DNA of 64,000 nucleotides from assembly GCF_030144855.1 (NCBI RefSeq), contig NC_082710.1, forward strand, positions 151,466,001-151,530,000, in the 5' to 3' direction. Under the pieces are notes generated by a model, which saw only the letters and a list, made by a program, of their open reading frames with translations, was not told the DNA's origin and ran no database searches. Origin of the DNA: Hypanus sabinus. Lineage: Eukaryota. This document shows positions 31,008 to 62,864 of the stretch, one piece after another (position 1 is the first letter of the stretch; the number at the start of each line of letters is the position of its first letter). Both the position numbers and the translations under genes were made by a program.

Positions 31008-32199
31008 CTGCAACAGAGAAATAGAAATTAGTGATGCAAAGTGATGTGAAGTTAATTATGTATTACTCTGGATTTCCAGCATCTGCAGAATCTCCCTTGT
31101 TAGTGATGTAAAGACCACAATGCAGAAAGGCATTAACTAATATTAAAACTGATTACATCTTAGGAACATTGGAACCAGGTTATATCAGATGGCTTTTAGG
31201 GGGTGTCCACTTCCAAATGATTTGCATTAACATATTATACATTTTCCTGTTTGCAATGTCTCCATCTTGAAAATTTTGTCAATCTTATTCATTCATGTGT
31301 TCATCGATTAAACATTTCACTGGTTAATGTGTTACAAATTTTACCTCCCCTACCACCTTTTCCAAACCACTAATACCCATTTCAATCCACGCTCCTTCCC
31401 AGTTGCATTCATACATTCATTTATGTCACCATCTCTCTTTCCCCAGCTGCTCCTGGTTTCATTTGTCCTTCACCTCTCATAATGGTTCCAAAATCATCTT
31501 CCTGATGTATCAGATCTCAGCACTTTTATCCATTTTTCTTTATAATTATCAACCTCCGTGGTCCTTAGCCTCACCTCACCTCCCCCTTCCTTGCTTCATC
31601 TTCCTTTTCTTTATTGGCTTCCATCCATCATGTGCAGAACTCCTGTCTTCTGTTGCCATACTCCCCCTCCCCTATGCTGACCCTTTTACCCATTATCGTT
31701 TATCTCCAAACTCCCCATGCCCAGTATACCATAATGTCTTGTTTCACTAATCACTGTGTCGATCTTTCCTTTTCATTTTATGAGCTATCTTCCTCCCTTC
31801 ATCACCGTCCTTTCCCGCAACAGATGCCTCTCAAGCTGCTCAGTTCTTCCAGCAGACAGTTACTCCTGATTCCAGCACCTACTGTCTCTTGTGTCTCAAT
31901 GGAATATTATGATGATATTTGGATGTACATTATTGTGCAAAAGTCTTAAGCAATATACATATATACATGGTTGATTTGTTGGCATCCATCTGTCTTGAAG
32001 GACAATGGGTGATGATGATTATCATCACAAGCATGGGCGGAAGATATGGAGATCCTAAGATGCCCAGTCATCAAGATCACTCACTTAGCCCCACCAGTGT
32101 AGTCCAAAGGAAAGTTAATGAAGCAACAGTTAGCTTGCACACGAGAGTTTGGAGATAATCTATCAGAGTTACAGGGAATTAGCTGGTCCTAAATTGCAG

Positions 32200-35100
32200 A
32201 GGTATGTAGCTGGGTGACTGTAATAAAAATGTGAATAGGCATTTAGCACAGAGCATCATGTGGCCATTCCTTACAATAATAAGTAAACCACTTTGGATAA
32301 TGTTGTTGGGGTGACCTCCCAGGAGACTGCTGGTTTACTGGCACTGAGCGCAAGTCCATTGTGCTGAAAGGAAAAAGGGAGAAGAGGGATGTGTTAGTGA
32401 TAGGGGACTCAACATTCAGGGGATCAGGCAGGAGATTTCATGGAGGTGAACAGTACACTCAAATCGGATGATGCCTCCCTGGTGCCAGGATCATGGACAT
32501 CTCAGATTGCGTCCACAGCACTTTGGAGAGTGAGAAAGAGTAGCTAGATGTTTTAGTACATATTGGTACAAGTGACAGAGGAAGGAAAAACAGAGAGGTC
32601 CTTAAGAGTTAATTTAGAGAGCTAGGTAGAAATCTGAGAAACAGGACCACCAGCATTGCAATTTATGGATTACAGCTTGTGAAGGGTGGTGGGGGGGGGA
32701 ATCTGGATGATCTGGCAGATTATTGAGTGGCTGAGAAGCTGATGTGGAGGGAGGGGTTTCAGGATCTTGGATCTTTAAGATCTCTTCTGGGCGAGATATG
32801 ACCTGTTCAGAAGTGATGGGCTACACTGGAACTGAAGGAGGACCACTGTTCTCACTGGAAGGTTTATTGGAGACAGTTCAAACAAAATTGGTAGGATGTT
32901 TGGGACCAGAGTGAAGGTCTCAGGATAAGATCGATGGTAAAAATGCAAAGATAACATAAAATCAGTCTGTTAGGAAGGGCAGGCAAATGATAGGATGAAA
33001 TTGCAATTAGCAGGGAGAGTATCAGTGCATTAGGGATGAAGATTCAATGTGTAGCAAATATAGTACTCAACGTGTTATATCTCAATGCACGGAGTATAGG
33101 AAATAAGTTGGATGACCTTCTTGCACTATTATAGATTGTTAGGTATGGTGTTGTGGCCATCACGGAATCATGGCTGAAAGATGGTTGGAGTTAGGAGCTG
33201 AATGGTGTAACAGAGGGATAGGATTGAAGGCAGAGTGGGTAGCATGGCTTTGCTGGTAAAGAAAGATGTGAGATAGGATCAGAAGATGTTGAATCCTTGT
33301 GGTTGAGTGAAGATCTTGCAAGGGTAAAAGGACCTGATGGCAGTTAAGTACAGGCATCTAAACAGTAGCTGGGATGTGGAGCACAGATTACAAAGGAAAA
33401 GAGAAAAGGCATATCAAAAGGGCAACGTTATCACAGTCATGGAGATTTCAACATGCAGGTCAATGCAGGAAAATCAGGCTGGTAATGGATCTCAAAACAG
33501 TGAGTCTGCTGAATGCCTATGAGATGGCTTTTTAGAGCAGTTTGTCATTAAGCTGACTAGGGGATCAGCGGATCAGTTATATTGGATTGAGTGTTATGTA
33601 ATGAACTGGATGTGATTAGGGATATTAAGATAAATGAACCCTTAGGAGACAGTGATCATTATTTCAGTGGAGCAAAGGAAATTACATTAGTATGAGAGAG
33701 AATTTGGCCAAAATAATTTGGAAGAAAATGCTGGCAGGGATGTTAGCAGGGCAGTATTGGCATGATTTTTTTGAAAAAAAGTCAACGGTGCAGGATAGAT
33801 TTATTCTAAAAACAAAGAAATAGTTAAATGGCAAAATAATACAACCAGAGCAGACAAGGAATGTCAAAGCTAATTTAAAGTAAAAGATTGGGCATAAAAC
33901 AATGCAAAGATTAGTGCTAAGACATATCGTTGAGAAGCTTTTTAAAACCTACAGAGACCAATAAAAAGAATCATTAGAATGTGAAAGATGAAATATGGAA
34001 GTAAGCTAGCAAGCAATATAAAAGTGGATTGTAAAGATTTTTGAAGTATGTAAAAATGAAAACAAGATGGCAGTGGATATAGGACCACTAGAAAATGAGG
34101 TCAGAGAAATAATAATGGTGGACAAGGAGTGGGCAGAAGAACTAAATGAGTATTTTGCATTAGTCTTCATTGTGGAACACACTAGCAGTGTGCCAGATGT
34201 TGAAGAGTGCAGGGGAAGAGAAGTGAGCACAGTTACTATTACAAGGAAGAAGGTGCTGAAAAAGCTGAAAGACTAAAGGGTAAATAATTCATCCGAGTCA
34301 GATGAACTGCACCCTAGGGTTGTGAATGTGGTAGTGGTAGGGATTGTGGAGGCATTAGTAATGATGTTTGAAAATTCATTGGAATCCAACATGGTGCCAG
34401 AGGACTGAAAAATTGCAAATGTCACTCCACCCTTTAAGGAAGGAGGAAGGCAGCAATGAGGAAATTACAGACCAGTTAGACTGATCTCAGAAGTTGGGAA
34501 GATATCAGAGACAATTGTTAAGGATGAGGTTATAGAGTATTTTGTGAGAAAGGTCAAGATAGGACAAAGTCAACATGGTTTAATTAAGAGAAAATCTTGC
34601 CTGATAATCCTTTGGGAATTCTTTGAGGAGATTACAAGTAGGATAGATAAAGGGGATGTAGTGGATGTTGTATATTTGGACTTCCATAAGGCCTTTGACA
34701 AGGTGCCACACATGAAGCTGCTTACCAAGTTAACTGCCCATGGTATTAAAGGTAAGTTACTAGCATGGCTGTTTGGTAGGAGGCTGCGAATGGGAAGAAA
34801 AGGATCCTGTTGGATGCCAGTGAATAGTGGTGTTATGATGGCTTCTTTTTATGCTGTATGTCAATGACTTGGATGATGGAACAGATGGCTTTGTTGCCAA
34901 CTTTGCAAATAATATGAAGATTGGTGGAGGGACAGGTAGTGTTGTGGAAAGAGATAGGCTGCAGAAGGACTTAGACAGATTAGGAGAATGGGCAAACAAA
35001 GTGGCAAATTAAATACAATTTTGGAAAATGCATGGCCATGCACTTTGATAGAAGAAATAAACGTGCAGGCTATTTTCTAAATGGGGAGATATCAAAAATT

Positions 35101-35820
35101 CTGAGATACAAAAGGACTTGGGAAACCTTGTGCAGAATGCCTTAAAGGTTAACTTGCAGGTAGAGTTGGAAGTGAGGAAGGCAAATGTAATGTTAGCATT
35201 CATTTCAAAAGGTCAAGAATACAAGAGCAGGGAAGTGATGCTGAGGCTATATACGGCCGGGGCTGAGGCCTCACTTCGAGTGTTGTGAATAGCTCTGGAC
35301 TCCTGATCTAAGAAAATGTGCTGGCATCGGTGATGGTTCAGAAGTAGCTCACAACTTTGATTCTGGGAATGAAAGTGTTATCATACAAGGAACGTTTGAT
35401 AGCAGTGGGTCTGTACACCCTGGAATTGGAGGGATGGGGAGGGGAAATCTCATTGTGAAACCTTATGAATGTTTTGAAGTCCTAGACCGAGGAGATGAGG
35501 AAAAGATGTTTCCCATGATTGGCAGTCTAGGACAGAGTACATGGCCTCAGGATAGTGGGGTGTCCATTTAAACCAGAGGGTGGTAACTTTCTGGAATTTA
35601 TTACCACAGGCAGTTGTGGAGGCCAGGTCACTGGATGTATTTAAGGCAGAGCTTGCTAGGTTTTTGATTGCACACAACATCAAAGGTTACGTGGGGGGAA
35701 GGCCAGCAGTTGGGCTGAGGAGGGAAATCAAAGGATTAGCCATGATTAAACCGTGGAGCAGACTCGATCGGCGAAATGGCCTAATTCTGCTCCTATGTCT
35801 TACAGTCTTATGGTTTTATT
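32200..35820 (+). mobile_element. CR1-clade LINE (HER1-like), long degraded copy: ORF1 esterase, APE endonuclease, RT, 3' tail
   Basis: ORF1 GDS...CLPGARI...VHIGT; endonuclease YLNARSI...VAITESWL; RT VYLDFHKAFDKVPH, FANNMKIGG; 3' tail ggcctaattctgctcctatgtctt. Confidence 0.93.
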
Positions 35821-36746
35821 ATAGTCAATATGTTTGGCACTAGCTTGGCTGCAAGGAACTACCAGAAGGATCTTCAATGATGTCCATCCACCTTAAGGGC
35901 TCCACTCTGGATTTGTTGTCTGTGATTACACCCATAGCCTTCGTCTCTCCCAAAGCTGCCTGCAAGGCAGTAGGTCTCCTTACCCTTAGGGAAGATTTAT
36001 TTCACGAGCAGCAGTGTGTGTCCAGACAACAGTGGGACTGCGTGCTATGTGTACAGGAGCCAGACCTCCTCCCTGTCCACTGTAGTTCAGCCTGAGTCTA
36101 AAAGAAGTTCAGTTTCCATGTGTCGCCAGCAAGGTGGTACTACATGAGGTTTGCTGTTGGACAGGCTATGTACTGGCAGGGAGAGACTTATACATTCCAT
36201 TCTCCTTTTTGTAAGACTGCTAGCCAGTGTGGAAGCTGAAAGTGAGAGTGACACGCACTGCCCACTACAGTACCACACTAGATGCATCAAAACAACTGTA
36301 GGTAGAGAGATAGGGTGCTTAAGATTTTTGTACAGTATTGTATTTGTCAACATGGAGCAGAAAATAGGTCTGCAAATATGGTGGGAAGAAAAGATGTTGC
36401 GAATGGCAATGCTGGAGCACTGTGGGATGTGTGTGACAGGGAGCATAGACAAAATGTCAAGCTGGTGGTGGGGTGGTGCAGTTGCAGACTTATCCAGCTT
36501 TGAGTCGCCAGGCAAGTACATTGTATTCCAAACAGCTGGTATATTGATCACTACAGAATGTCTCTCTGGTGCTTCCTGCTCCCTCCCCGATCCCTTCAGA
36601 ATGACCCAGCCCTGATTCCTCTCTCCCTGCCCCCTTCCCATTTTCAGTCCACAAGCGAGACCTATATCAGAATCAGGTTTATCATTACTCACAGAAGTCA
36701 TAATTTTTTCTGTGGTCACAGAAGTCTGCAGTACATAAACTTACTA

Positions 36747-36813
36747 CACTACTGTGCAAAAGTCAAGCACCCTAGCTATATATAAGTGCACAAGGCTTTT
36801 TTTCCCAGTACTG
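36747..36813. mobile_element. Tiny Tc1/mariner-type MITE (near-palindrome)
   Basis: ta|cactactgtgcaaaagtc...gcttttt...cagtactg|tg: degenerate TIRs and TA context. Half copy at about 31925-31950. Confidence 0.5.
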
Positions 36814-37233
36814 TGATATGAAAGATGTTATAGAATCATAGAGAGGTATAACATGCATACAGGCCATTCTGTACACCAAATCTCTGCCAACCATCAAACA
36901 CCAATTTAGATTAATTTTACTCTAAATGATTTCAGTCACTCCATTCTGCCATTAACTCCCACTGGGGCAAAATCACAGCAGTCAATTCACATAGTATGCT
37001 GCACTCCTTTTGAATGTGCGAGGAGACACGGACACGCAAAGGAAACCCATGTGATCACAAGGGCAACATGGAAACTGCAAGCAGAGACCTTTGGAATTTT
37101 GGATTGAAACTGGAAAATTGGAGCAATGAGCCATAATTTTATGGACTGTACCACTGTGCTATTTATGATACAGAAGAGGTTTCCTTAGGTTTCCACAGCT
37201 GGTAAAAGTCTTATGTTGGGATTCTTTAAATTG

Positions 37234-40200
37234 TATCAACAATAGAGGGTATTGGAAGCCAAAGAAAATCAACAACTCCCCTATGATCAGGTCAGTTAGT
37301 AATTGCAGAGTGTAAACTTAACAGTTATACTGGCTGAAAGAGAGTGGGAGATCAGGAGCATTTACTTCAATGAGAGGACATCTGGATACAAGTCCAGGAT
37401 AGCTTCTCTACTCCAGCAATCCACATTGAAAATTCTCAACTGTAATTCTCCAAACAAGGCTGAGTGGGGAGCAGCAACTTTCTAAGTGATTTTATAAAGC
37501 AATCCCCAGCTAAGGAGATGTTCTTTTTCCCACAGGGAACTGTTAATTCAAAACTAGATACATCATTACCTTTAATTTTATTCCACAAAAATTTGAGAAC
37601 AAACTTCTAATTACAGGTTAATAATTACCAAACAATAAGACCATAAGTTCATATGACATAGGAGGAAAATTAGGCCATTCAACTTATTGAGTCTGCTCTG
37701 CCATTCCATCATGGCTGATCCCAGATCTCACTCAACACCGAACACCTGCCTTCTTGCCATATCCTTTGATGCCATGACCGATCAAGAAATATTCAACTTC
37801 TTCCTTAAATATACCATGGAGTTGGCCTCCACTGCAGTCTGTGCAAAGCATTCCACAGATTCCCTACCCTATGGCTAAAAAAATCCTCCTTACTTCTGTC
37901 TTTAATGGTCACCTCTCAGTTTTGAGGCAGTGATCTCTAGTTCCGGACACCCCTACCAGATCAGATTCAGATTCAGCATCAGTTTATTGTCATTTAGAAA
38001 CCACAAATGCAATGCAGTTAAAAATGAGACAATGCTCCTCCAGAATGATATCACAAAAGCACATGACAATACAGATTACACTAGAAAATCCACATAATGT
38101 TTGGCAATCCCCAATTCAGAGTCCAGAGAGGCGGCTCTCCACATCTATCCTATCTAGACCTTTCAACATTCGTAGGTTCCAGTAAGATCCCCCTGCATTG
38201 TTCTAAGTTCCAAAGTGTACAGAGAAAAGCTGCCAAACACACTTATTATAATCCGTTCATACCCGGAATCATCCATATTAATCTCCTCTGGACTCTCACA
38301 AATGATAACATAACCTTTTTGAGACATGGGGTATAAAACTGTTGGCAAAGATTATTGAAATAAGGAGAACTTAGGGGAAATTCCAAATTAGAGAAAACCA
38401 GCTATAAATTAGAATCAACATGAAGGGGCAATGTTCAGAAGCACTTAGTCACACAAGCAGTTAATGGAAATCTGTAAGTTTCTCTGCAGAAAAATACCTG
38501 TAGAAGCTGGGTGCCAATTAAAAATTTTAAGATTGAAATTGATAGCTTTCACTTATTTATGTATGTAATGGTCTAGTGACAAAATGGCAGATAGAGCTGA
38601 TCAGTTTAATGATAGAAGAAACTCAGATTTTAATTGTGCATCGCTTGTTCCTTGGAGGTAAGTTTGCAACTCACAGCATTTGACATGACACACTCTCAGT
38701 TTACTCTACAGGAGGAGCTCTCAGTTCCCCATCAATAGGGGAAGCGTAAAGAAAATGTTTAAGATGTAAGACAATTAGAGAAAAGGAGTTTTGTTGATGT
38801 TTGGAGAGAGAGAAATAATACAGTGGTCATGCTGCAACAGAGAACATAGAGGGGTAGAAAAATAGTATTCTTAATCCATGCATGTTGAGGAGATGAATAT
38901 TGGGAGATCAAATTCAAGTGGAAAGCGTACAGTAAATGAGAGAGTTATTCTGGTGCACATCCCTAGCTCTCCAAAAGCGGCAATACAAGTAGACAGAATG
39001 AAGTAGTAAGTCTAGAGACTGCAACAGATAGTATCCAGCTGCTGTGCTGAGAATGATGAAATAAATCTGTCTTTTCTGGCAATCAAGGGTGGTATAATAG
39101 GACAGGAAGAGTATATCAACTAGAATAAGATGTCAACAGTTTTAAAAACTGTGCATATTGCACAGTTAATACAGGCTGATTTTCATGATTGGTTCCATTG
39201 TTAAATGTCAGCCAATAAGAACCTTGGGATATGGATATACATTAATGAAGACGCTGCTTTATTATGGAAAGTACGCATTCTACTCTTAAGATTCAAGGTA
39301 CGTTTATAATTAGAGAATATACTAATTATACTGCCTGGAGATTTGTTTGCTTACATGGAACCTCAAAGCAGGAAATCTGCAAGAACCCAAATGAAAAAAA
39401 AAACAAGCCCCATTGCACAAATGAAATAACAAAACTCATGCAAACAATTGAACCAATCAACAATAGTCCTTAGTTCAGTACCTCAGAGTATCCAAGTGGA
39501 TGCCCAGAGCCTCTCTTACTAGTTCATCATATTAGTAGGCACGGAGCAGAGCAGCTGGTGCATTCTCTATCTCCTCAGCACCATGAACAAAGGAGTGACC
39601 ATAGCAATGAGCAGGTGAAATTGCCCCTTGCCTCAGATCCTGACACTCTGTCTTTTCAGTTTTTCTAGGCCAATATCCAAATTGACCAAATAATGGAACA
39701 ACAAAAGGCTCCGGCGTCCTGGAGAGTGGAGTGAACATCACGAGAATGAAGGAAATTAGCTTGCACCTCCACTCAGCAACCAGAGCATTCCAAAATACCA
39801 CCCGGGCCACCTGTATGAGCATCAGAATTCCACTGACCCAATGTCTCCTGTCCGAATGGCTAGCTCACTGAATCTACATTGATTCTGCAAAGTACCTTCT
39901 CAACTCATCCTCCTATTGTCATCACTTGCCTCCTCACTGTTTGCAGCAATAATTTAACATAACTTACCTCAGAGAATGTATCCTTTGATGTTTTTAGTCA
40001 ATTTTATGGTCTTTTGAATTACCAGTGAGCTGTCACACATGTTCAACAGAGCCACCTAAACTGGAAGTGGTATTCTGCTATTACTTGTGTTGCAACTTAC
40101 ACTGTATTTTGTTCTGTTCCTCAACATAATAAAAAAATCTGTAATAGAACTTCTCACAAGGCTTTACTACAGAACAGGGATCACCGTTTCTCTCAATCAT

Positions 40201-41500
40201 TCATCCACATTAAGACAATGACCCAGTAAAAACCTAGGGACTGCTCAACAATATATTAAATTTGCAAATGCTAACAATATTTTTGGTTCTTTCATAGTTC
40301 ATAAACAGAAAGTTAAATTACTTACTGGAAGAGACTGTAAAGTAAAAAGCAGCATGCTTTAAATGTAGTCAGGGCATTAATTAACCAAGTGACTAACAGC
40401 AGTGACAGTAACTTGATCTCTTGTAGATTTTAACAGACTCTGGTGTGGAGCTACTTATTGGTCCATGTGTATTGCAAACCTGACAACCACATCCACTGAG
40501 AATGAAAGAGATTGGTCTGGTCACTAATTATCAGTCAATGGAGTCTGATGATCTGATTTTACACTCGCATATACACAACAACATTCATGTCAACTACTCT
40601 GCCCAGAGCACTTTAAAGACAAAGAAGTGCTTTACAATGTTGAATTACTTAGTCATGCACAATGCTGTCAGTTCTACAAACAGAGTTTTGGGATTAACAG
40701 GAATATCTTCTTTAGAGTACTGCTTGAGAAATATTTATGAATCAGTGTGTTGCTAAGAATTTCCTTGTTATTCTCTGATGTAGTGTCATGGCATTTTTCT
40801 ATAAGATGAGAGACAGATGTGAGCTCAGGCTATAATTTTTTCAAGATGTAAAAGTGTAGATATCAGCCAACACTGCCTGACACTCAGTACGTACATAGAT
40901 TTCTCAATGATCCTCGTTCTGATTACTGGGCAGATTCAGATTCTGATAGGCTTATTATCATACAAGACCATAAAACAAGGAGCAGAATTAGGCCATTCAG
41001 CCCATCACGTCTGCTCCACTATTTCATCATGATTGGACCATTTCCCTTTAAACAACCTTCTCTTCCTTCTTCCCATAACCTTTCACACCCTGACAAATAA
41101 AGAACCTATAAACCTCTGGTTTAAGTGCACCCAATGGCCTGCTCTCCACAGCCACCTATTGCAATGAATTGCACTGATTCGCCACCATTTAGCTATAGAA
41201 ATTCCCTGTCAATTTATTTTTAAATGGAAGTTCCTCAATTCTGAGCCCATAGCCTCTAGTTCTGCTATAGGCCACATCCTCTCCACGTTGACTATCCAAG
41301 CCTTTCAACATGCAATAGGTTTCAATGAGATCCTCCTTCATTTTTCTAAATTCCAGTGAGTACAGGCCCAACACCATCAATCTTCTCTCAAACAATAACA
41401 CTTTCAATCCCAGGATAATTCTTGTGAACCTCCTCTGAACCCTCTCCAATGTTAGTGCATCCTTTCTTAGATAAGGGGCATAAAACTGCTCAGAGTACTC
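37234..41500. repeat. Segmental duplication, proximal copy (MHC promoter/leader/5' intron 1)
   Basis: Collinear direct similarity to 59081-64000 through unique sequence and shared CR1 fragments, roughly 85-90% identity by eye. Homology starts at tatcaacaat in both copies. Confidence 0.93.
40326..40355 (-). pseudogene. Defective proximal copy of the leader exon (22-nt deletion, phase 0)
   Basis: ATG CTG CTT TTT ACT TTA CAG TCT CTT CCA|GTAAGT. Matches the distal leader except for loss of 22 nt (ggctaaacagtggatgttcagt on + strand) and G>A at donor -1. Spliced to alpha1 it reads IFTSLHFTTC* (out of frame). The nearest upstream ATG is followed by CCC TGA. Confidence 0.8.
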
Positions 41501-43130
41501 TAGGAAGCCTCACCAGTGCCTGATAAAGCCTCAGCATTACTTCCTTGCTTTTATATACCAGTCCTCTTGAAGTGAATGTAAATATTGCATTCGCCTTTCT
41601 CAATACTGACTCATACTATCAGTCATCCTGTAGGGAATCCTGACCAAGTACCTCCTAAGTTCCTTTGGGCCTCAGATTTCTGAATTTTCGCCTCATTTAT
41701 AAAACAGTCTTTGCTTTTATTCCTTCTCTCAAAGTGCACTTCCATACATTTCCCAAAACTATACTCCACCTACTGTTTCTTTGCCCATTCTCCTAATCTG
41801 CCTATGTCCTCTGCAGCCCACCTGCCTCCACAATACTCTATGCCTCTCCACCTTAGAACCATCAAACTCATCATCTACCTCATTGAAATATACTATATAA
41901 AGGAAGCAATCCCAACATGGACCCATGCAGAACACCACTAATCACCACCAACAAACAAAAGGCTCCCATTATTGCCAGTCTTTCTCTCCTGCCATTCAGC
42001 CAATGCTTGATCCATGCAAGTGCCTTTCCTTTAATACCTTATCTTGTTAACCAGCATCATGTGCAGAATTTTGTCAAATGCCTTCTGAAAATTCAAGTAT
42101 GCACCAGCCACCAATTCTCCTTTGTCTGTCCTGTTTGTTATTTCTTGAAGGAATTCCAACAGATTATTCAGGCAGCAGTGTCTCTAAAGGAAAGTTGCTA
42201 ACATCAGCCTTTTTTATCGTGTGTCTCTAAGTACCCTGACATCTCATCCTTAACAATTGGTACCAACAATTTTCGATCCACTGAGTTCAGGCTAACTGAC
42301 TTATAATTTCCTTTCGGCTCCCTCCCTCCCTATTAAGAGTGAGGTGATATTTGCAAATTTCCAATCCACTGGAGACATGTCAGAATCCAGTGATTCTTGA
42401 AAGTTTATTACTAATGCCTCCACCATCTCTTCAGCTACCACTTTCACACTGCTGGGGTCCATCCCGTCCAGCTGCCTTACCAACTTTATTCCCTTTCAGA
42501 TTCCCAGGTACCTTATTCCTAGTTATAGCAACTGCACTCACTTCTGCCACTACACTCTCGAGCTTCCATCATAACGCTAGTATCTTTCAAAGTGATAATT
42601 GAAACAACATATGTACTTATTTAGTTAATCCACCATTTCCTTAATGCTTCTCTAACATCATTCTCCAGTGGATCAATATCCACTTGCCCCTGTTTTACTC
42701 CTTACAATTCTGAACAAAAATTTTCATCTGAACTTTGATATTATAGGATAGCTTCATATTTCCCTTTCTCCCTCCTTCTGGCTTTTTAGTTGCCTTCTGT
42801 TGGTTTTTAAAAGTGTCCCAATCTTCTAACATCCTACTAACTTTTTTTTTCTCAATGACATGCCCTCTCTTTTGCTTTTGCATTGTCTTTGACATGGTGG
42901 CATTATCCTGCATTTTGAATGCTTCTTCTTCATTGGGATGTATCTAACCTGTGCATTCTGAATTGCTCCCAGAATCTCCACCAATGCTGTCCTGCCATCA
43001 TCCCTGCCAGTGTCTCCTTCCAATGAACTTTGTCCAACCCCTTTATCATGCCTTGATTATTACCTTTACTCCACTGTAATAATGATACATCTGGCTTTAG
43101 CTTCTCCCTCTCAAACTGAAAGATGAATTA
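40960..43130 (-). mobile_element. CR1-clade LINE RT/3' fragment
   Basis: MERVQRRFTRII...LGLYSLEFRKMKEDLIETY and SGPDGM/WKFANIT motifs on the minus strand. Confidence 0.9.
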
Positions 43131-51000: not shown

Positions 51001-53222
51001 GAAAGATACTGGCCTGTATAGTAGAATGACTGACAGGCAGGAGACAGCGAGTGAGAACAAAGTGGGCCTTTTTTTGGTTGGCTGCCAGTGACTAATGGTG
51101 TACCTTAAGGGTCAGTATTTTGACCATTGTTTTTCACATTCCTTGTTAATGATTTTGATAATGAAATTGATGGCTTTGTGGCAAAGTTTGTGGATGATCT
51201 GAAGGTAGCTGGAGGGGTTGGTAGCACTGAGGAAGCAACATGATTGCAGCAGGATAAAGACAGATTGGAAGAATAGGCAAAGTAGCAGATGGAATACAAT
51301 GTTGGGGAATGTATGATAATGCATTTTGGTAGATGGAACAATCTAGCAGACTATTATCTAAATGGGGAGAAGGTTCAAAGTTCAGAGGTGCAGAGGGTCA
51401 TAGGAATACTTGTGCAAGACACCCAGAAGGTTAACTTATAAGTTCAGTCTATGGTAAAGAAGGCTAATGCAATGTTGGCATTGATTTCAAGGGGAATAGA
51501 GTATAAAAGCAAAGAAATAATGCTGAGCCTTTATCAGACACTAGCCTGGATGCACTTGGAGTATTGTCAACAGTTTTGGATTCCGTTTCTCAGAAAAGAT
51601 GTGTTGTCATTGGAGAGAGTCAAGAGGAAGTTCACAAGGATGTTTCCAGGAATGCAGGGTTTAACATATGTGAACCATTTAGCAGCTTTGGTCATGTACT
51701 CACTAGAATTTAGAAAAATGCAAGGGGATCTCTTTGAAACCCACCGAATGTTGAAACGACTAGATAGGGTGGATGTGGAAAGGATGTTTCCAATGTAGGG
51801 TGAGTACAGAACTAGACAGCACAGCATCAAAATTAAGGAGCAACCTTTTAGAACAAAGATAAGGAGGAAGAACTGAACCCCTAAGGCAGTAGTTTATTGA
51901 AATACAGACAAGAGCAATGTGATAGATACAATGAAACAGATGGGTTGAAGACGGTGTATTTTAATACAGGGGTATTATGGGTAAAGATGATGAACTTGAA
52001 GCATGGATCAACGCACAGAATACCATGTTCTGACCATCACATAAACTTTCCTGAGAGAGTAACATGAATAGATGCTAAATATACCATGATTTTGATGTCT
52101 TGCAAAGGATAGAGATTTTGGTAACAGCTGGTGGGTGGAGTTCAGCCGTCAGAACATAAGACATAGGAGCAAATTTAAGTGACTCAACACAGCGAGTCTG
52201 CTCCATCATTCCATCATGTCTGAATTATTTGCTCCTTCAGCTGCACTGTCCTGTCTTTCCCCAATAAACTTTGGCACCCTGACTATTCAAGGACATACAC
52301 AATTCTGCTTTAAGGATGGACTTCCACAGCAACAAACGGCAAAGAAATTCCACAGATTTGCCACCATCTGGCTAAACACAGTCCTCCTCCTCTCATCTAA
52401 ATTGATGTCCTTCCATTCTGAGGATATGCCCTCTGGTCCTAGACACACCTATCATTGGAAACATCCTCTCTTCATCCAGTCTACCTTAGCCTTTCAAAAT
52501 TGGAAAGGTTTTGATGAGATCCCCTCTCATTCTTCTGAACTCCAGCCTGTACCGGCCCAGAGCCATCAAACATTCTTCATATATTAATGATTCCACTCCG
52601 AGAATCATTCTCATATAACACCTCTGGACCCACTCCAATGCCAGCACATCATTTTTGAGGTAAAGGGCACAAATCTGCTCACAATTCTGCAAGTGTAGTC
52701 TGACCAATGCCTTATAAAGCTGCAGCATCAGATCCTTTCACTTGTGTTCCAGACCTCTTGAAATGAATTCTGATCTGGCAGTTGCCTTCCTTATCACCAA
52801 TACATCCTGTAAGTTAGACTTCAGTGAATCTTGCACAAGGACTCCTTTGTACCTCGGAATTTTGAATTTTCTCCCCAATTAGAAAATATTTTACACCTTT
52901 ACTCCTTCAAAAAAGGTGCTTGACCATACACATCCCTATATTGTATTCCATCTTCCACTTCTTTGCCCAATCTCCTGATGTGTCTATGTCCTTCTGCAGA
53001 TGCCCTGCTTCCGCAACACAATCTCATGCCTTCCACCTATCTCAGTACCACTGGCAGACTTGGTCATAGATCCATCCAAATTGTTGACATATAATCTGAA
53101 AGGAATTGGTCCCAATACCAACCCCTACAAAAACTCCAGAATTCACCATCAGCCAACCAAAATAGGACCCATTTATTTCCTTTCTTTGTGTACCTGCCAG
53201 TCAGATAATCTTCTATCGGCAC

Positions 53223-53953
53223 GCATGAGGAAATCTGCAGATGCTGGAAATTCAGTCAACACACACAAAATGCTGGTGGAATGCTGCAGGCCAGGCAGCT
53301 TCTATAGGAAGAAGCACAAGTCCCGACGCAGACTGGGAGACTGTTTCACTGAATACCTGTGCTCTGTCTGCCAGAGAAAGCAGGATCTCCCAATGGCCAC
53401 ACATTTTAATTCCATGTCCGATTCTGATATGTCTACCCATGGACTCCTCTACTGTCAAGAGCCACATGGCCACACTCAGGTTGGAGAAACAACATCTTAT
53501 ATACCATCTGGGTAGCCTCCACCCTGATGACATGAACATTGACTTCTCTAACTTCCATTAATGCCCCTCCTTCCCTTCTTACCCCATCCCTGATACATTT
53601 AAATTTCCCCCTCTTTTTTCTTTCTTTTTCTTTCTCTCTGCCCGTCACTCTGCCTGTTCTCCATCTCCCTCTGGTGCTCCCCTCCTCCTTTCTTTCTCCC
53701 TAGTCCTCCTGTGCCATGATCCTTTCCCTTCTCCAGCTCTGTATCCCTTTTTCCAATCACCTTTCCAGCTTTCAGCTTCAGCCCACCCCCTCTTATCATT
53801 TTGCATTTCCCCCTCCCCCTCCTACTTTCAAATTTCTTACTAACTTTCCTATCAGTTAGTCCTGACGAAGAGTCTCGGCCCGAAACGTCGACAGACTTTT
53901 TCCTATAGATGCTGCCTGGCCTGCTGTGTTCCACCAGCATTTTGTGTGTGTTG
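53223..53953 (+). mobile_element. Penelope-like element fragment with inverted ends and 13-bp TSD
   Basis: GIY-YIG C-terminal part RRRLGDCFTEYL...DLPMATHFN...LEKQHLIYHLGSLHPDDMNIDFSNF. About 50 bp of the 3' end is repeated inverted at the left end. Flanked by cttctatcggcac (53210-53222, 53954-53966) inside a CR1. Confidence 0.88.
53857..53894 (+). ncRNA. Minimal type I hammerhead ribozyme motif in PLE terminal repeat
   Basis: AGTC-CTGACGA-A-GAGTCTCGGCCC-GAAA-C-GTC-GAC: conserved CUGANGA and GAAA core, GUC triplet (predicted cut after 53889), short stem I (GTC/GAC), stem II with one mismatch, loopless palindromic stem III (ACGT). Confidence 0.65.
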
Positions 53954-55129
53954 CTTCTATCGGCACTAGTAGCTTCCCAGTAATGCCATGGGCAATTATC
54001 TTGATATATAGCCTTGTGTACAGCACCCTGTCAAAGATGTTCTTAAAATCCAAATAAAGATAATCCACTAATTCTCCTTAGTCTGCCTTATTTCCTCAAA
54101 CTTGCAGAAATAATTAGTGAAATTGTAACAACTGCATTCGAGGGAACAACATGGAGGCCTTGTCCACTTAGGGAAAATAGGATTAAAAAACCCCATGGCC
54201 TGATGGTATATATCTTAAATTATTGAGTGAGGCAAGAGTGGAGATTGTTGGGGTCTTGACATCATGTTGTCTCTAGCTACAGTTGAGGACTTAGATACTG
54301 GAATAGGATTTTTGAGCATTTGTAAGACCATGGCCTAATTAGGGGAAGCTGTACAGCTTTATGTGGGACAAGTCATGTCTAACTTGACTGAGTTTTGTTG
54401 ATGAGATGATGAGGGTGATGGATAAAGTTAGAGCTGTGGATATTGTCTACATACTGTAGGTTTTAGTCAGGTGCTGGACAAGGTCACTCATGGGAAACTC
54501 ATCTAGAAGGTGCATGGTGAAATTGGATTCAGAACTCGCTTGCACATAGAAGGGGGGTTAGTGGCTGAAGGGACTTAATCTAGTTGGAGATTTTTGACGT
54601 ATATAAATGACCTGGATAAAAAGGCATTTGTGTGGTTTAGTAACTTTGAAGATGATACCATGATTGATGGAGTTATGGATAATGTAAGGATCCGCACAAT
54701 AACATAACTGCCCAAATACAGTACTGTATACCCAAACCAAAAAAATACTTACAGAATTAAATTGGTTTGTTGTCATGTACACCAGGGTACAAAGACATTT
54801 CTTGTTCACATGAAGCTCACAGAATAAACAGAGTACTTGGTAATACTAAATACACCAACAAATAGGATGAGTGCAGAGCAACAGAATGATGCAAAGACTG
54901 TGCTGCAACCTGAAGTACTGCAAAAAGAAATGTTAAATTGACAGGAGTTGGGAGAACCCACTTGCACATGCCAAATATTCTGAGACATCTAATAAAGTCC
55001 ATGCATACCTATTATTTAAAGCCTTCCTTCAAATCTTGCTACCCCCATAAAATTAATCAGAGTCTTCCTCAACCAGAGGTCCTGGATGAATCATTAGTTC
55101 TGCATATCATCTGAGGGCCAAATCAGTGG

Positions 55130-57050
55130 CATTCAGTTTTGATGACCAAATAAGATACAAGAGTTCCAGGTATAATCTTGGAAAGCAGCCACACAGGCAA
55201 AGTGGGAATTCAGTCTAAACATGAATCACTGAAGGATACTCAGTTTTGGCAGGGCTTGAATGCTATTACCTCTTATAAAGTGATACCAAGAGATATAGAT
55301 GACATCAGGGTATTGCATTGAGTTGAGCTCAATGCATTCTCTGCTCAGAATGACCATCAAATAGGAAGAAACTTTCATGAGCACCTACAGCCCCTAAGGA
55401 CCTTGTCAGTTCCGTCTCTGAGGCTGGTCTGAGAGCATCCTTCAGGAAGGTGAAGGCACAGAAGGCATACTGTGATGAAGTGCTTTCAGTGGATGGTGAC
55501 GAAACACATCGTTTCCTGTCTGAGAAGCAACTTGGACCCATTCCAATTTAAATACCATTCCAATTAAAGTAGATGCCATTTCATTGCCTCTTCACACAAC
55601 CCTGGTTCATCCGGACATCAAAGGTGTATACACCAGGTTCCTCTTTATCAACCACAGCTCAGTGTTCAATACTACCATCTCCTCGAAAATAATCAATAAC
55701 CTTCAAGACCTTGTTGTCAGTACCATTTTGCGGAACTGGAACTTTGTTTTCCTCACTTGCAGATCTCAGTCATTTCAGATTGGCAACAGCATCTCCTGCA
55801 CAATCTTCATCAGCACATGTGCACCACAGGCTGTGCGATTTCTTCCCTGATAAACTCACTTTATGCTTAGGAATGTGAGGCTAAGTACATCTCCAATACC
55901 ATATTTAAGCTTGCTGATGACACCACTGTCTTTGACTGAATCAAAGGTATTGATGAATCATCATATGCAAGGGAGAGTGACAGTCTGGTAGACTCTCACT
56001 CAGTGTCAGCAAGACAAGGAGATGATTATTGATTTCAAGAGGAGGAGTCCAGGTATCCAGGAACTGGTCCTCATTGGGGGATCAGAGATGAAGGTCAGGA
56101 TCTATAAATTCCTCTGTGTTATCGTTTCAGAGGATCTTTCTTGGGCTCAGCTCGTAAGTGCAATTACGAATAAAGCACACAGCTCTTCTACTTCTTTAGA
56201 AGTTTTCAATGATTCCACATGATATCTAAAAGTTTGACAGACTTCTATAGATATATGGTGGACAGTGTACTGGTTTCATCAAGGCCTCGTATGGAAACGC
56301 CAATGCACATGTAAGAAAAATCCTACAAAACATAATGGATATGGCCCAGTCCATCACAGGTAAAGCTTTTCACTTAACTGTGCACACCTACACAGAATGT
56401 GCTTGCAAATACACAGCATCAACCATCAAAGACCACCAAAAGCTAAACCATGCTCTTTTCTCCTTGCTACCGTTAGGAAGACATATAGGAGCCTGAAGAT
56501 CCACACAACCAGGTTTGGGATTAGTTATTTCCTTTCAACCATTGGGTTCTTAGAAAATCAGAATCAGATTTTTATCACTGGCATGTGATGTGAAATTTGT
56601 TAACTTAGCAGCAGCAGTTCAATGCAATACATAATCTGGCAGAGAGAGAAAAAATAATAATGAATACAATAAAACAGAATAATAAATAAGTAAATCAATT
56701 GTGTATATTGAATAGATTATTAAAATGTGCAAAAACAGGAAAAACATTAAAAAAGTGAGGTTTTGTCCAAAGCATCAAAGTCCATTTAGGAATCACATTG
56801 CGAAGGGAAGAAGCTGTCCCTGAATCGCTGAGTCATTGCTTCAGGCTTCTACCTGATGGTAACAGTCAGAAAAGGGCATACCCTGGGTACTGGAGCTCTT
56901 TAATAATGGACACTGTCGTTCTGAGACACTGCTCCCTAAAGATGTTCTGGGTACATTGAAGGCTAGTGCCCAGGATGGAGCTGACTAGATTTACAAACTT
57001 CTGCTGCTTCTTTCAGTCCTATGCAGTCCTCCATACCACACAGTGATGCA
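55130..57050. mobile_element. Rex1/Babar-like LINE fragments, tail-to-tail (+ 55130-56560, - 56560-57050)
   Basis: WQGLNAITSYK, VSEAGLRASFRKV, KLADDTTV, MIIDFKRR; opposite-strand tail cagaatcagattttt. Confidence 0.82.
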
Positions 57051-57589
57051 GCCTCAGTGATGGGGATTATGTCATTTACTTCATTACTAAATTGTTCCCT
57101 GACCTTATGGACTCACTTTCCAGGACTCTTCATCTCATGTGCTCGATATTTATTGCTTATTTGTTTATTATTATAGTTTCTCTTTTTGTATTTGCATGGT
57201 TCATTGTTTTTTTTTGTACAATGATTGCATGACTAGTTGTGTGTGGTCTTTCATTGACTCTATTGTGTTTCTTGGATTTGCTGAGGATGCATACAAGAAA
57301 ACAGAACTCCGGTTTGTATATTGAGACATATATGCAATTTGATAATAAATTTCTTTTGAACATTGAACCTGTGCCTTGTCCAACCACCTCCTTCACCCTC
57401 CTTACTTCTGCTCTTCTGATCATTTGTTCCATTTCTCTTAATCACTTCACCCTCTTCCTCATCAGTTTCTTTCATTCATCATCTCCCTCTTCTTCCTATT
57501 GCACTCCATTGCCATGGCTCCCTTGGTCCACAAATTCTAGCTCATTCACCCCTCCAATCCTTCGAACATTTGCTATTTGTTAGGATGAT

Positions 57590-58260
57590 GGCAAACTTTG
57601 GGAACTCAGGTTGAGGCACCTGATGTTGCGGTTTTTGCCGAACTTGCGGTGTTGCCTTGCAAATGTTCCATTACCAGTTGAGGTGACCCCCTCGGTGCGC
57701 AGTTGTTGGTGTTTCTCTCGGGAAGTACTCACTTTTATTTAGAACACCCCCCACCCCCCCCCCCACCCACACCAACATTCCCTTGCCTTGGTCCTGATGG
57801 TTGGTAATCCCTTTGGATGACTTTTAAATTCTATTAGCTTGCGCTTCATTTGCTCTTAGGCATTCTTCGATGGCATCTATTTCTATATGTTTGTCTACCG
57901 AGTTATCTGAAGAGAACCATACATCTAAAAAAACTCATGCTGCTTAATGTTTGCCAGTGCCAGGACCTCCGCAGTTTCCCAATTAAAGTTGGGTCCTTCT
58001 CAGTCATCATGTTCCCTGATCAGCAACAGTGGATGATGCCTCTGTACTGCCAGCCTGCTGGTCTATCTACCCCTGGCTTAGATACTGGGCTACATCCCAG
58101 TTCCTCTCCCAAACAACTAGTGGAATCTTTGTTCCACTGTTCGCAATACTGTCTCCAACACTGAGCTCTTTGCCCCATACTCTGCACAATCAACAGAGTC
58201 ATCCTTACGATTAAATGGAGAAATAGTCAGAGCTCATTCACCCGAACACCCTATGGTGTT
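57590..58260 (-). mobile_element. Second Penelope-like family fragment (GIY-YIG end + terminal repeat)
   Basis: Minus strand FNWETAEVLALAN...WFSSDNSVDKHIEIDA. The terminal region carries a decayed hammerhead-like gtcacc-tcaact-ggtaat hairpin. Confidence 0.65.
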
Positions 58261-58799
58261 AGTTCACTTTCTATCTGAGAGCACATTTGGTAACATCTCA
58301 TAGAACATAGAATGCATAACAATAGAACAGACCACAGATTCTTAAGCCACAGTGTTGCACCAAACTTATTAATCTAGTAACTGTATGTATGCAACAATGG
58401 GCACATCCCGGTACACCGCTTCAACAGGCAAGCTAAACCAAGTGAGGGTAACTGGGAAACTCCAACACTGGTGATATAGGAATATGCCTACCCCAGCATG
58501 CCAAGCCAGTTCCAGCAGACGGGGTGGATGAGATCTACTAAAGATCAAACTGCCAAGAAGGCTGTGCTGCAATGCTTTGTGGATAGTGAAAGGCATGAGA
58601 AGGCGCAGAAGGAGTCAAGGCAATACATTGCAGACGAGGATGTTTTAATACGATTGAGGCCGAGAGAGAGGAACAACCTCAGTGTAATGTCTTTTTCAAT
58701 CTAAAACTCCACCTTCATAGGGCACATCATGATCGGTAACAGCAGATAACCAAAACATTAATTAATTGCATACATAAACAAACCCCTTCTGCTTATGCT

Positions 58800-59072
58800 A
58801 TGCCCATATCTGCAATTTCGGTAAAAGGTAAATTGCTTAGATGAAATGGTGTTTGCAGTGGTCATGGGGTATGGAGGGGGGTGTCAGTAAATTGTACATA
58901 TCTATAACATGTGGAAGTTACTATCCAGAAGAATAAACGTGACAGAAACAGCGAGAAGCAAAATTATAGATTTCCTTTGGTTCTTTCTCTCTGGATCAGT
59001 GTCCGTCTCTGACTGTTTATTCCTCACTCTATTTGCAAGGACAATGTGTCTGATCATTACAGAGTTCAGAAG
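58800..59072 (-). pseudogene. Class A GPCR fragment (TM5-ICL3-TM6-ECL3), GPR139/GPR142-like expanded family of cartilaginous fish
   Basis: LLNSVMIRHIVLANRVRNKQSETDTDPERKNQRKSIILLLAVSVTFIL, frameshift at about 58925, then WIVTSTCYRYVQFTDT...*...LSNLPFTEIADMG. Resembles, from memory, the LLNxxxxRHIxxxxRVR...DPE...RKSIILL...FILLW pattern of shark/ray GPR139-like genes. One frameshift, one stop, no TM1-4. Confidence 0.62.
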
Positions 59073-60302
59073 TTGCATTTTATCAACAATAAAGCATTTT
59101 GGAAGCCAAAGAAAGTCAACACCTCCCCCTATGAATAGGTCAGTTAGTAATTGCAGAGTGTAAACTTAGCAGCTAGACTGGCTGAAAGAGAGAGGGAGCT
59201 CAGGAACATTTACTTCAATGGAAAGACATCTGGCTGAAAGTCCAGGATATCTTCTCTACTCCAGCAATCCACTTTGAAAATTCTCAACTGCAATTCTGCA
59301 AACAAGGCTCAGAGTGGGAAAGTGACTTTCTGAAGCAATTCCCAGCTAAAGAGATGTTCTTTTATCAACAGAGAACTGTTAATTCAATACTAGAAACATC
59401 GTTAAATGTAATTTTATTCCACAAAAATTTGAGCATACTTCTAATTCCAGGTTGATAATCACCAAACAATAAGACCATAAGTTCATATGAATAGGAGGAA
59501 AGTTAGGACATTCAGCCTATTGAGTCTGCTCTGCCATTCCATCATGGCTGATCCCAGATCCCACTCAACCCCATACACCTGCCTTCTTGCCATATCCTTT
59601 GATGCCCTGACCGATCAAGAAATATTCAACTTCTGCCTTAAATATACCATGGAGTTGGCCTCCACCACAGTCTGTGCAGAGCATTCCACAGATTCCCTAC
59701 CCTATGGCTAAAAATATCCTCCTTACCTCTGTTCCAAAGGTCAAACCTCAATTCTGAGGTAGTGTCCTCTAGTTCCAGATATCCCTAACATAGGAAACAT
59801 GCTCTCTACATACATCCTATCTAGACCTTTCAGCATTCGATAGGTTTCAATGAGATCCCCTCACATTCTTCTAAATTCCAGTGTGTACAGAGCCAAAGCT
59901 GCCAAAAACACTTCATATGATAATCCTTATTAATTTCCTCTGGACTCTCACCAATGACAACATATCCTTTTTGAGACATGGGGGCTGAAACTGTTGGCAA
60001 TGGTAGGGGAATTTCTAAATTAGAGAAAATCAGCTATAAATTAGAAACACCATCAAGGGGCAATGTTCAGAAGCACTTAATCACTCAAGCAGCTAATGGA
60101 GATCTGTAAGTTTCTATGCAGAAAAATACACATAGAAGCTGGGTGCCAATTAAAAATGTTAAGATTGAAATTGTTAGCTTTCTCTTATTTATGTATGTAA
60201 TGGTCTAGTGACAAAATGGCAGATAGAGCTGAACAGTTTAATAGTAGAATAAACTCAGTGTTTAATTGTGTGTCGCTTGTTCCTTGGAGGTAATTTTGCA
60301 AT

Positions 60303-61149
60303 TGTTACGAATGTGCCACAACTCTGAGGGGCCAAAGGGTACAAAGTAGCCCCCTCCTTCTTGAGAATCGCAAGATCGCTATTAACTCGGGTCTGGGACC
60401 CAGGAAATGAGAGAGAGACGTCCAGAATACACAGGGTTTGGAATGTGTCCTGGCCTCAGCAAGACGGAACCATTGATAACAGCTATTGTCTCTTGGAGAC
60501 GGAATTGTGTATTGAGTACTGTACTATTCATTGAAGCCCTTAGGGGATGACCAGAGTGGGCTGGTTGAAGGATTGCATCATCCCAACCTGATTGACATCT
60601 GAGACCCCATGAGTAAGGATAAAAGCGGGTCTGGGGAACAACTCCTTTAGACGCACCAGGAGAAACGCTAGAAATCCCGTGACAGCGTTTAATAGCGACA
60701 GCCGGTGGGGGGCACGTGTGCGTCCTTTTCCCTTGCATGGGAATTGGCAGGCTCACCACGGAAGAACGGCTTTAGCTAAAGGAGAGGCCACAAGTGACCA
60801 GCCACACCAACAGAACTCTTGAAGGATCGAAATCATAAAAGGAAAAGCCGGCAAGTTTCTAAAAATCTCCCTCTTGACTCCAACCAAATGCTGCAGCCTG
60901 AATGAACTGAGTGACTTTTATATTTCCATCGGACAATACATTATCCCCTAGACAACGATAGAATTATTTCTTATTGATTATTATACCTGCACTTTTAGAT
61001 TTAGTATTGATGATGCATATTATCTGTATGTTTGCATTTATATTATTTGTGTATTTTTACTAATAAATGCTGTTAAAAATAGTACCACCAGACTTCAATG
61101 GACCTCTCTCTCTTTGCTGGTAAGTGACCCAGTTACGGGGTTTGTAACA
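60303..61149 (+). mobile_element. Solo LTR (Gypsy- or ERV1-type), 847 bp
   Basis: Termini TGTTAC...GTAACA, 4-bp TSD CAAT (60299-60302, 61150-61153), AATAAA at 61062-61067. Empty site (caac, 38667-38670) in the proximal duplicate. Confidence 0.92.
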
Positions 61150-62812
61150 CAATCCACAGTGTTTGACATGGCACACTCAGTTTACTCTACAGGAGAAGCA
61201 CTCAGTTCCCCATCAACAGGGGAAGCCTGAAGGAAATGTTTAACATGTAAGAAAATCAGAGAAAAGGAGTTTCGTTGATGTATTGCACAGAGAGAACGAA
61301 TACAATCGTCATGGTGCAACAGAGAGCATAGTGCGGTAGAAAAATAGCATTCCTAATCCAGGCATGTGTGAGGAGAGGAGGTCAAATTCTAGTGAAAAAC
61401 ATACAGTAAATGACAGAGATATTCTGGTGCACATCCCTAGCTCTCCAAAAGAGGCAATACAAGTAAACAGAATGAAGGATGTAAGACTAGAGGCTGCAAC
61501 AGATAGTATTCAGCTGGTGTACTGAGAATGATGAAATAAATCTTTATTCTCCGGCAATCGAGTGTGGTATAATAGGAGAGGAAGAGTACATTAACTAGAA
61601 TAAGATGTCAACAGTTTTAAAAACTGTGCATATTGATCAGTTAATACAGGCAGATTTTCACGATTGGTTCCATTGTTAAATGTCAGCCATTGCGAACACT
61701 GGGATGTGGAATATATATTAATGAAGAAGCTGCTTCATTACGGAAAGTACCCATTCCACTCTTAAGATTCAAGTTACATTTATTATTGAAGAATGTATAC
61801 ATTATAATGCCTTGAGATTTATTTGCTTACATGGAACCTCAAAGCAGGAAACCTGCAAGAACCCAAATAAAAAAAGGACCAACCCCGATTACAGAAGGGA
61901 AATAAGAACACAAATCATGCAAGCAATTGAACCAAACAACAATGCTCTGAACCAAATGAGACCTTAGATCTGAACCCCAGATAATCCCGGAGTAGGCCCA
62001 AAGCCTCGGTTATCAGTTTATCATATTAGTGGGCAAGGAGAAGAGCAGCCAGGGCATTCTCTATAGCCTCAGCATCATGGAGAAAGGAGTGACCATTGCG
62101 ATGAACAGGTGAAATCGGCTCTTGCCTCAGATATTGATACACTGACGTTTCAGTTTTTCTGGGACAACATTTAAATTCACCATATAATGGAACAGCAAAA
62201 GGCTCCAGCGCCTTGGAGAGTGGAGTGAACATTGTCAGAATGAATGAACTTGGCTCTCGCCTCCACTCAGCACCCATAGCTATCCAAAGTAGGATCAGAA
62301 TTCCAGTGTCCCAATGTCTCCTGTCCAAATGTTTGGCTCACTGCATCTACATCAATTCTGCAAACGTACCTTCTCAGCTCATACCCGAATCTTGTCTTGT
62401 CATCACTTGACCCCTCACCATTTGCAGCAATAATTTAACACAATTTACCTCAGAAAAGCTGCCCTAGATGTTTTTAGTCAAATTTATTGTCTTTTCAACT
62501 ACTAGTGAGCTCTCACACAAGTTCGATGGAGCCAGCTTAACTGGAAACAATATTCTTTTGTACTTGTGTTGCAACTTACATTGCATTCTTTTCTGTTCCT
62601 CAACATAATACAAAAATATCTGTAATGCAACCTCTCTCAAGCTCTTTACTACAGAACAGGGATCACCGTTTCTCTCAATCATTCATACACTTAAGACGAT
62701 GACCCAGTAAAAACCTAGGAACTACTCAACAATATATTAAATTTGCAAACACAATTAATCTTTGTGGTTCCTTTAAAGTTAACAGACAGAAGTTAAATTA
62801 AAAAGTGCTTAC

Positions 62813-62864
62813 CGGAAGAGACTGTGGCTAAACAGTGGATGTTCAGTAAAGTAAAAAGCAGCAT
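62813..62864 (-). CDS. MHC class I-like leader (signal peptide) exon, intact distal copy: MLLFTLLNIHCLATVSS + phase-1 G
   Basis: Minus strand reads ATG CTG CTT TTT ACT TTA CTG AAC ATC CAC TGT TTA GCC ACA GTC TCT TCC G|GTAAGC: 52 nt, hydrophobic 17 aa ending in small residues. G + AT of the alpha1 exon gives GAT (Asp) in frame. Confidence 0.8.

Follow-up and report, generated by a model that had tools for sequence, protein, structure and literature searches.

A non-classical MHC class I gene of the stingray Hypanus sabinus with a frameshifted leader exon and an intact, duplicated leader exon 31.8 kb upstream of alpha1

Introduction

How can a class I gene supply its product with a signal peptide when the leader exon nearest to its body no longer reads in frame? 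The question is raised by a 64-kb stretch of the Hypanus sabinus genome (contig NC_082710.1, positions 151,466,001 to 151,530,000; hereafter, the window), which is repeat-rich, has zero runs of N, and carries on its minus strand a gene of the major histocompatibility complex (MHC) class I family. Two leader exons precede the gene body, which comprises the alpha1, alpha2, and alpha3 exons and a last exon encoding the transmembrane segment; the leader closer to the body (proximal leader) is frameshifted, and the farther one (distal leader) is intact. We propose that this gene, apparently kept for hundreds of millions of years, may now be wholly dependent on a duplicated promoter and signal-peptide exon lying 31.8 kb upstream, the original first exon having decayed inside the new first intron. 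Comparative sequence analysis leaves the case for and against this proposal evenly balanced, and the evidence on both sides is given below. The coordinates of all features are collected in Table 1.

Structure and orthology of the leader exons

Compared with the distal copy and the Pristis, Leucoraja, and Heptranchias leaders, the proximal leader is missing 22 nt. The last base before its donor site (position -1) is A, compared with G in the distal copy and in all three outgroups. Polarized in this way, both the 22-nt deletion and the donor G>A change appear to be derived. Splicing of the proximal leader to alpha1 (31007-30756) leads to a stop at the 11th alpha1 codon. All three defects had been listed in the initial annotation of the window and were confirmed here, together with the polarity of the two lesions.

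The second leader, located 22.5 kb upstream of the first, had been described as intact and of phase 1, and this also held. Its sequence indicates that it is the true orthologue of the Pristis, Leucoraja, and Heptranchias leaders, and apparently the sole intact one in the stingray gene. The leader expected of this lineage has 17 residues of the form MLL(F/V)TLLN..C....SS and is encoded by a 52-nt phase-1 exon located 5-11 kb 5' of alpha1. In Hypanus, the leader at this canonical position (9.3 kb 5' of alpha1) is frameshifted, and the intact orthologous leader is found 31.8 kb 5' of alpha1 instead. The distance between the proximal leader and alpha1, set beside intron 1 lengths of 5.4, 9.8, and 10.7 kb in the outgroups, argues that the proximal leader occupies the ancestral position.

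A third leader was sought in two ways. Scanning of the interval 31008-40325 for ATG-started, stop-free, hydrophobic mini-exons with a phase-1 donor returned none, and in a tblastn search with the orthologous leaders the distal copy alone was matched, with no further leader-like exon. The further in-frame leader in this interval that, according to the initial annotation, would have spoken against a gene dependent on the distal leader was not found.

Rescue of the proximal leader from within was considered as an alternative. Use of a GT located four bases downstream (40321) would restore phase 1 (MLLFTLQSLPV-NFHILAF...) and leave the frame open through alpha1; alternatively, translation could begin at an internal Met in alpha1, and the NCBI protein does begin MVAMLDD. 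However, on the weight matrix the alternative donor reaches 3.6 bits, the adjacent proximal donor 7.1 bits, and the donor of the distal leader 8.9 bits. The resulting N-terminus of 11 residues, of which five form a hydrophobic run, does not constitute a signal peptide. Judging by the known domain layout, an internal start would remove the first beta strands together with the signal, and no class I fold would be expected to reach the endoplasmic reticulum. We therefore find self-rescue of the proximal leader scarcely credible.

Such truncated starts are common among the public models of this lineage, since the leader is absent from most annotated orthologues. The models of Hypanus, Mobula birostris, and Cetorhinus start at an internal Met, and that of Leucoraja is labelled "partial"; odd N-termini are found in Pristis (80 spurious residues), Stegostoma, and other models. 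Only Pristiophorus and Heptranchias begin with MLLVTLLNVYCVP(T/N)VSS among the annotated orthologues. The NCBI model of the stingray gene, XP_059825167.1, is identical to residues 40-340 of the spliced model built here and differs from it in being leaderless, and a leader defect like its own is seen in the models of Mobula, Cetorhinus, Leucoraja, and Pristis. The intact leaders of Leucoraja and Pristis were missed by the public gene models; the leader is missed because intron 1 is 5-11 kb long or longer. Thus, the leaderless models of the lineage appear to reflect a weakness of annotation and not biology. Whichever leader the stingray gene uses, in most elasmobranch genomes the leader of this lineage has escaped automatic annotation, and "leaderless" models should not be taken as biology.

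Origin of the duplicated first exon

Each leader lies within a copy of a block that includes the promoter, the leader, and the 5' part of intron 1. The duplication of this block, reported in the initial annotation, was confirmed by blastn and global alignment: 4005 bases of the two copies (37230-41500 and 59077-64000) could be aligned, at 86.7% identity and with 42 indel events, and the distal copy contains an 851-bp stretch absent from the proximal one. Homology between the copies continues to the end of the window, so both upstream limits of the block are minimum values. Haplotype collapse or an assembly gap, which had been offered as a possible cause, was rejected: the copies are 13% divergent, and the window contains no N.

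The comparison with Pristis locates the breakpoints. Positions 14375-14719 of the Pristis sequence (L003) align to 37463-37117 of the window and span the duplication breakpoint, and the match to Pristis intron 1 resumes at 36960-36824 and at 31924-30706, adjoining alpha1. On the distal side, the match to Pristis and to the proximal copy ends at 59073-59077, and an unrelated relic of a GPR139-like receptor gene lies beyond it. Across the breakpoint, the proximal copy thus retains the order seen in Pristis, whereas the distal copy ends in a new junction. This pattern lends good support to a single partial tandem duplication of the 5' end of the gene, about 22 kb in size, and a second gene body with a subsequent loss need not be assumed. 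Of the two breakpoints, one would have fallen inside an upstream GPR139-like gene and the other within intron 1, 3.1-3.7 kb from its start. Such an event in the stingray lineage would have left a single gene body preceded by two serially arranged first exons, equivalent to each other and each with its own promoter and leader. Scaled to the Hypanus-Pristis divergence under assumed split dates, the duplication is probably old, of the order of tens of millions of years.

A different history had been proposed in the initial annotation, that of two tandem paralogues, both initially complete. The upstream copy would have lost its exons from alpha1 to the transmembrane segment and the downstream copy its leader, with complementation in cis between the remaining parts. 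This history would also leave two promoter-plus-leader blocks and one body. However, it requires the duplication of a whole gene and a large clean deletion, where one partial tandem duplication suffices. The homology ends sharply within intron 1; its proximal side continues into the ancestral intron, as in Pristis, and its distal side abuts the GPR139-like fragment. In addition, tblastn with 155 class I and related proteins revealed no trace of an alpha1, alpha2, or alpha3 exon in the 41.5-62.8 kb interval, even at E = 1, in agreement with the earlier remark that no alpha1-3 exons lie between 41500 and 59081. We regard the two-paralogue history as highly unlikely, and the colinearity with Pristis and the junction with the receptor fragment fit one partial tandem duplication.

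The GPR139-like fragment, which covers transmembrane segments 5 and 6 of the receptor, abuts the distal breakpoint, carries two in-frame stops, and is absent from the proximal copy; its strongly matching part lies outside the homology between the two copies. The strong match at 58.9-59.1 kb was also considered as a hidden class I exon, and this was rejected in favor of the receptor fragment. In Leucoraja and Mobula hypostoma, automatic models merge GPR139-like receptor sequence with class I exons, so receptor genes of this type seem to be interleaved with genes of the non-classical MHC class I (MHC-Ib) group in rays.

Promoters and candidate splice sites

In both copies of the block, sequence alignable to the promoters of Pristis and Heptranchias is retained, and a CCAAT box and a TATA-like element lie within it. 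Thus, the arrangement agrees in part with that expected of alternative first exons: there are two first exons, and promoter sequence precedes each of them. The distal promoter retains the CCAAT box and also a batoid ATTGG box, which it shares with Pristis and which was lost from the proximal copy through a derived T>G change. With Pristis, Leucoraja, and Heptranchias as outgroups, 37 derived changes were assigned to the distal copy and 45 to the proximal copy overall, with no significant asymmetry; from -300 to the ATG, the counts were 11 and 18 (p = 0.26, not significant), a difference in the direction expected of a working distal promoter.

The alpha1 acceptor at 31007 is the strongest of the gene (12.1 bits; its real acceptors span 6.7-12.1 bits). 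According to the initial annotation, the proximal leader had no obvious acceptor in front of it; this was not entirely correct, since acceptor-like sites were found at 40495 and 40334. The site at 40495 scores within the range of the real acceptors; it was created by the same proximal-derived T>G change that destroyed the ATTGG box, and together with the proximal donor it delimits a possible poison exon of 170 nt, called solely by a crude weight matrix. The site at 40334 (ttttactttacag/, 10 bits) was created by the 22-nt deletion and lies nine bases ahead of the proximal donor. The 9-nt micro-exon that starts there is in frame; it would add Val-Ser-Ser and change the first alpha1 residue from Asp to Asn, and it is probably irrelevant.

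In Heptranchias perlo, a second, near-identical promoter block without a leader is present 3.1 kb into intron 1 (L002, 13120-13312). This repeat appears to represent an independent promoter duplication in the same gene lineage.

Gene body and identity

The body has the features of an MHC class I heavy chain: alpha1 and alpha2 domains of the MHC_I family, a C1-set alpha3 domain, a hydrophobic transmembrane segment in the last exon, and phase-1 boundaries at every exon. The Pfam MHC_I match of alpha1 is weak (E = 0.004, under the Pfam cut-off); its identity to the Hemitrygon protein is 100% over 77 aa. A protein search with alpha1 retrieved a skate protein of 79% identity, which led to a group of orthologues that NCBI names "MHC class I-related gene protein-like"; about 14 species of sharks and rays are represented in it. 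Membership of the stingray gene in this group is indicated by the shared motifs FVQG.CGCE and MNKYFKALLEKDCVKWLL and by a common exon structure. The orthologues are 54-97% identical; identity to the spliced model is 100% for XP_059825167.1, 96.8% for Hemitrygon, 89% for Mobula, 73-75% for Leucoraja and Pristis, and 61-64% for the sharks.

The ratio of nonsynonymous to synonymous substitutions (dN/dS), a check suggested in the initial annotation for the alpha exons, was 0.245 against Leucoraja and 0.19 against Heptranchias. Values of about 0.2 argue for long-term purifying selection on this old elasmobranch non-classical MHC-Ib gene, which is single- or low-copy. When solved structures were searched by sequence, the best matches were chain A of PDB 9ch4 ("Ig-like domain-containing protein") and, at about the same level, mammalian MR1 (E = 1e-51 to 1e-42). 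Classical class I molecules ranked below these; the search did not decide between the lineages UDA and UGA.

Spliced to the body, the distal leader gives an open frame of 1023 nt (340 aa). The open frame had been predicted at the outset, with a length of 1017 nt (338 aa) that corresponds to the acceptor at 26601; the annotation and the orthologues use the acceptor at 26607. These tandem alpha2 acceptors are six bases apart (ctcag/CCCCAG/CTG), both are in frame, and their products differ by Ala-Pro. The junction HS/APADVFVQ agrees with XP_059825167.1, and Mobula has HSVPADFFVQ.

The earlier statement that all body exons are intact was correct in that no frameshift was found over 971 nt, and incorrect with respect to the tail. 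A TAA at 16329-16327 of the minus strand replaces a Gln codon of Hemitrygon and Mobula. This Hypanus-specific stop removes 21 codons of the cytoplasmic tail (22 residues in Hemitrygon). The former tail codons remain alignable to the Hemitrygon tail QSTVVTRRDLETFLLRCQVQ and carry at least two Hypanus-derived replacements in 21 codons, compared with 6-7 in the 315 codons ahead of the stop. As the sole nonsense codon of the body, the stop affects only the terminal ~6% of the ancestral reading frame, most likely the part whose loss is best tolerated.

Table 1. Features of the Hypanus sabinus class I locus and the leaders of its orthologues (slashes in sequences mark exon boundaries)
Feature	Position	Strand	Description
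Distal promoter with upstream conserved block	62865..63448	-	~74-76% to the Pristis promoter, ~70% to Heptranchias
Distal leader exon	62813..62864	-	MLLFTLLNIHCLATVSS; intact, 52 nt, phase 1, donor CCG/GTAAGC
Distal copy of the block	59077..64000	-	leader with upstream and promoter sequence and the initial 3.7 kb of the intron; cut off at the window end
GPR139-like receptor pseudogene fragment (TM5-TM6)	58881..59120	-	tblastn with proteins P0054 and P0066, E = 1e-12 to 4e-14
Proximal copy of the block	37230..41500	-	colinear with ancestral intron 1; blastn and Pristis alignment
Possible poison exon	40326..40495	-	170 nt; acceptor-like site (8.9 bits) to proximal donor
Proximal leader exon	40326..40355	-	30 nt, phase 0; 22-nt deletion, donor -1 G>A
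Alpha1 exon	30756..31007	-	252 nt, phase 1-1; weak Pfam MHC_I
Alpha2 exon	26326..26607	-	282 nt; Pfam MHC_I, E = 1e-14
Alpha3 exon	22893..23165	-	273 nt; Pfam C1-set Ig, E = 1.6e-16
Last exon	16327..16490	-	connecting peptide, transmembrane segment, short tail, and TAA; orthologue alignment
Former tail codons past the stop	16264..16326	-	QSTIVNRRDLETFLLQCQVQ*; alignable to the Hemitrygon tail
Pristis leader	L003 12581-12632		MLLFTLLNTYCVATVSS; intron 1 of 5.4 kb
Leucoraja leader	L001 100-151		MLLFTLLNTYGVATVSS; intron 1 of 9.8 kb
Heptranchias leader	L002 10001-10052		MLLVTLLNVYCVPNVSS; intron 1 of 10.7 kb

Functional status of the gene

A tandem duplication leaves both first exons with the same upstream context, and a downstream first exon normally has no acceptor and is removed with the intron. 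After the duplication, either first exon could have been spliced to the strong alpha1 acceptor at 31007, and the two would therefore have been redundant. The proximal one may then have decayed, through the 22-nt deletion, the donor G>A change, and the loss of the ATTGG box. Its transcripts would now meet a stop in exon 2, and nonsense-mediated decay or a protein without a signal would be expected. Transcription from the distal promoter, followed by a 31.8-kb splice from 62813 to 31007, would yield the 340-aa protein with a truncated tail. As far as the sequence allows, the distal first exon appears to be the sole route to a class I chain bearing a signal peptide. The anatomy, the leader orthology, the lesion polarity, and the colinearity indicative of a tandem duplication were observed; firing of the distal promoter, use of the long splice, and a working product are three further steps that we infer. 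In our estimate, the chances are even that the gene has remained functional through its distal first exon after the partial tandem duplication.

As the main alternative, the gene may have become a unitary pseudogene only recently, or constraint on it may have been relaxed. In this case, a working proximal leader was disabled by the 22-nt deletion, either in the Hypanus sabinus lineage or in the sequenced individual alone; the body looks intact because little time has elapsed; and the distal leader, left over from the old duplication, is inert and open by chance. We consider this a real possibility, held somewhat tentatively. It agrees with the ancestral position of the proximal leader, and several further observations weigh for it and against continued function. 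Conservation of the distal promoter does not significantly exceed that of the proximal one, and derived changes in the distal promoter fall on deeply conserved positions (e.g., TTAAAA>TTAAAG). A 52-nt exon could stay intact without selection with p ~0.45 at ~5-6% divergence per copy, a rough estimate from the observed substitution and indel rates. The NCBI model begins at the internal Met in alpha1 and does not use the distal leader, nor any other. The poison-exon-like acceptor has been tolerated in the proximal copy, and transcripts from the distal promoter could be trapped by the exon 40495-40326, which would shift the frame and introduce stops.

The body also shows changes of this kind. Beside the Hypanus-specific nonsense codon in the tail, the Gly of the RLGY motif, retained in 12 of the 12 aligned orthologues, is replaced by Arg, and the derived replacements number 6-7 on the Hypanus branch versus 3 in Hemitrygon, although this protein-level relative rate is not decisive. 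All three are compatible with relaxed constraint in the Hypanus lineage. In several annotated elasmobranchs, the search returned no orthologue of the lineage, so its loss may not be rare. Searches of protein databases with alpha1 and with alpha1 plus alpha2 gave no short transcript-derived proteins, a result that is uninformative.

Other observations are less easily reconciled with a pseudogene. The lineage has been retained for hundreds of millions of years at a dN/dS of ~0.2. The body contains no frameshift, and a random first hit would have only a ~6% chance of falling where its single stop lies. The 6-7 replacements on the Hypanus branch are well under the 12-15 that would be expected if the branch had been neutral throughout. 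In addition, two lesions in the proximal leader and the loss of a promoter box suggest that the proximal copy has been dispensable for some time. The canonical leader is disabled, as in a unitary pseudogene, yet the distal leader and the body still form an open frame.

Comparison with known gene systems

In the UGT1A genes and the clustered protocadherins, tandemly duplicated alternative first exons have their own promoters and share the downstream exons. The stingray locus is similar in having two promoter-plus-first-exon units in series with a common exon 2 acceptor, and in that the downstream first exon, which has no natural acceptor, would lie within the intron of the upstream transcript. 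In contrast to these systems, the stingray gene has two units only, which encode the same signal peptide and not variable domains; one of them is frameshifted, and promoter use is predicted. The mechanism, if true, is thus already known in kind: tandem alternative first exons arise, and the redundant one is then lost. The locus would show a promoter and first exon in the act of turnover, in which a partial tandem duplication is followed by loss of the copy that has become redundant. If the distal leader is used, the locus would be a clean natural case of promoter and first-exon replacement without loss of function, and the public gene model that lacks a signal peptide would be corrected.

Unitary pseudogenes of MHC-Ib genes arise in birth-and-death evolution. 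The stingray gene resembles them in the frameshift of its canonical first coding exon, the nonsense codon in the tail, and the radical replacement at a conserved site; it differs in that a correctly oriented, intact spare of the first exon exists and no disabling lesion is found in the ectodomain exons. If the distal leader is unused, one stingray is losing a gene that is conserved in sharks and rays, and this would bear on the dispensability of this MHC-Ib lineage. The gene resembles the elasmobranch MHC-Ib lineages UDA, UFA, and UGA (PMC10751288, PMC12562908) in being MHC-linked, conserved in sharks and rays, low in copy number, and composed of MHC_I and C1-set domains.

Relic of an alpha3 exon

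A weak relic of the 3' half of alpha3 (DETDWVMKIIQLIIDDVAEFSC) was detected at 20526-20603 of the minus strand, between the alpha3 and transmembrane exons. A clearer copy is present at the same position in Pristis (L003, 28618-28752; ESSDVLPSQDEIYWMMK...DDGAEFS). Given this matching location, the alpha3 pseudo-exon seems to predate the split of the two rays.

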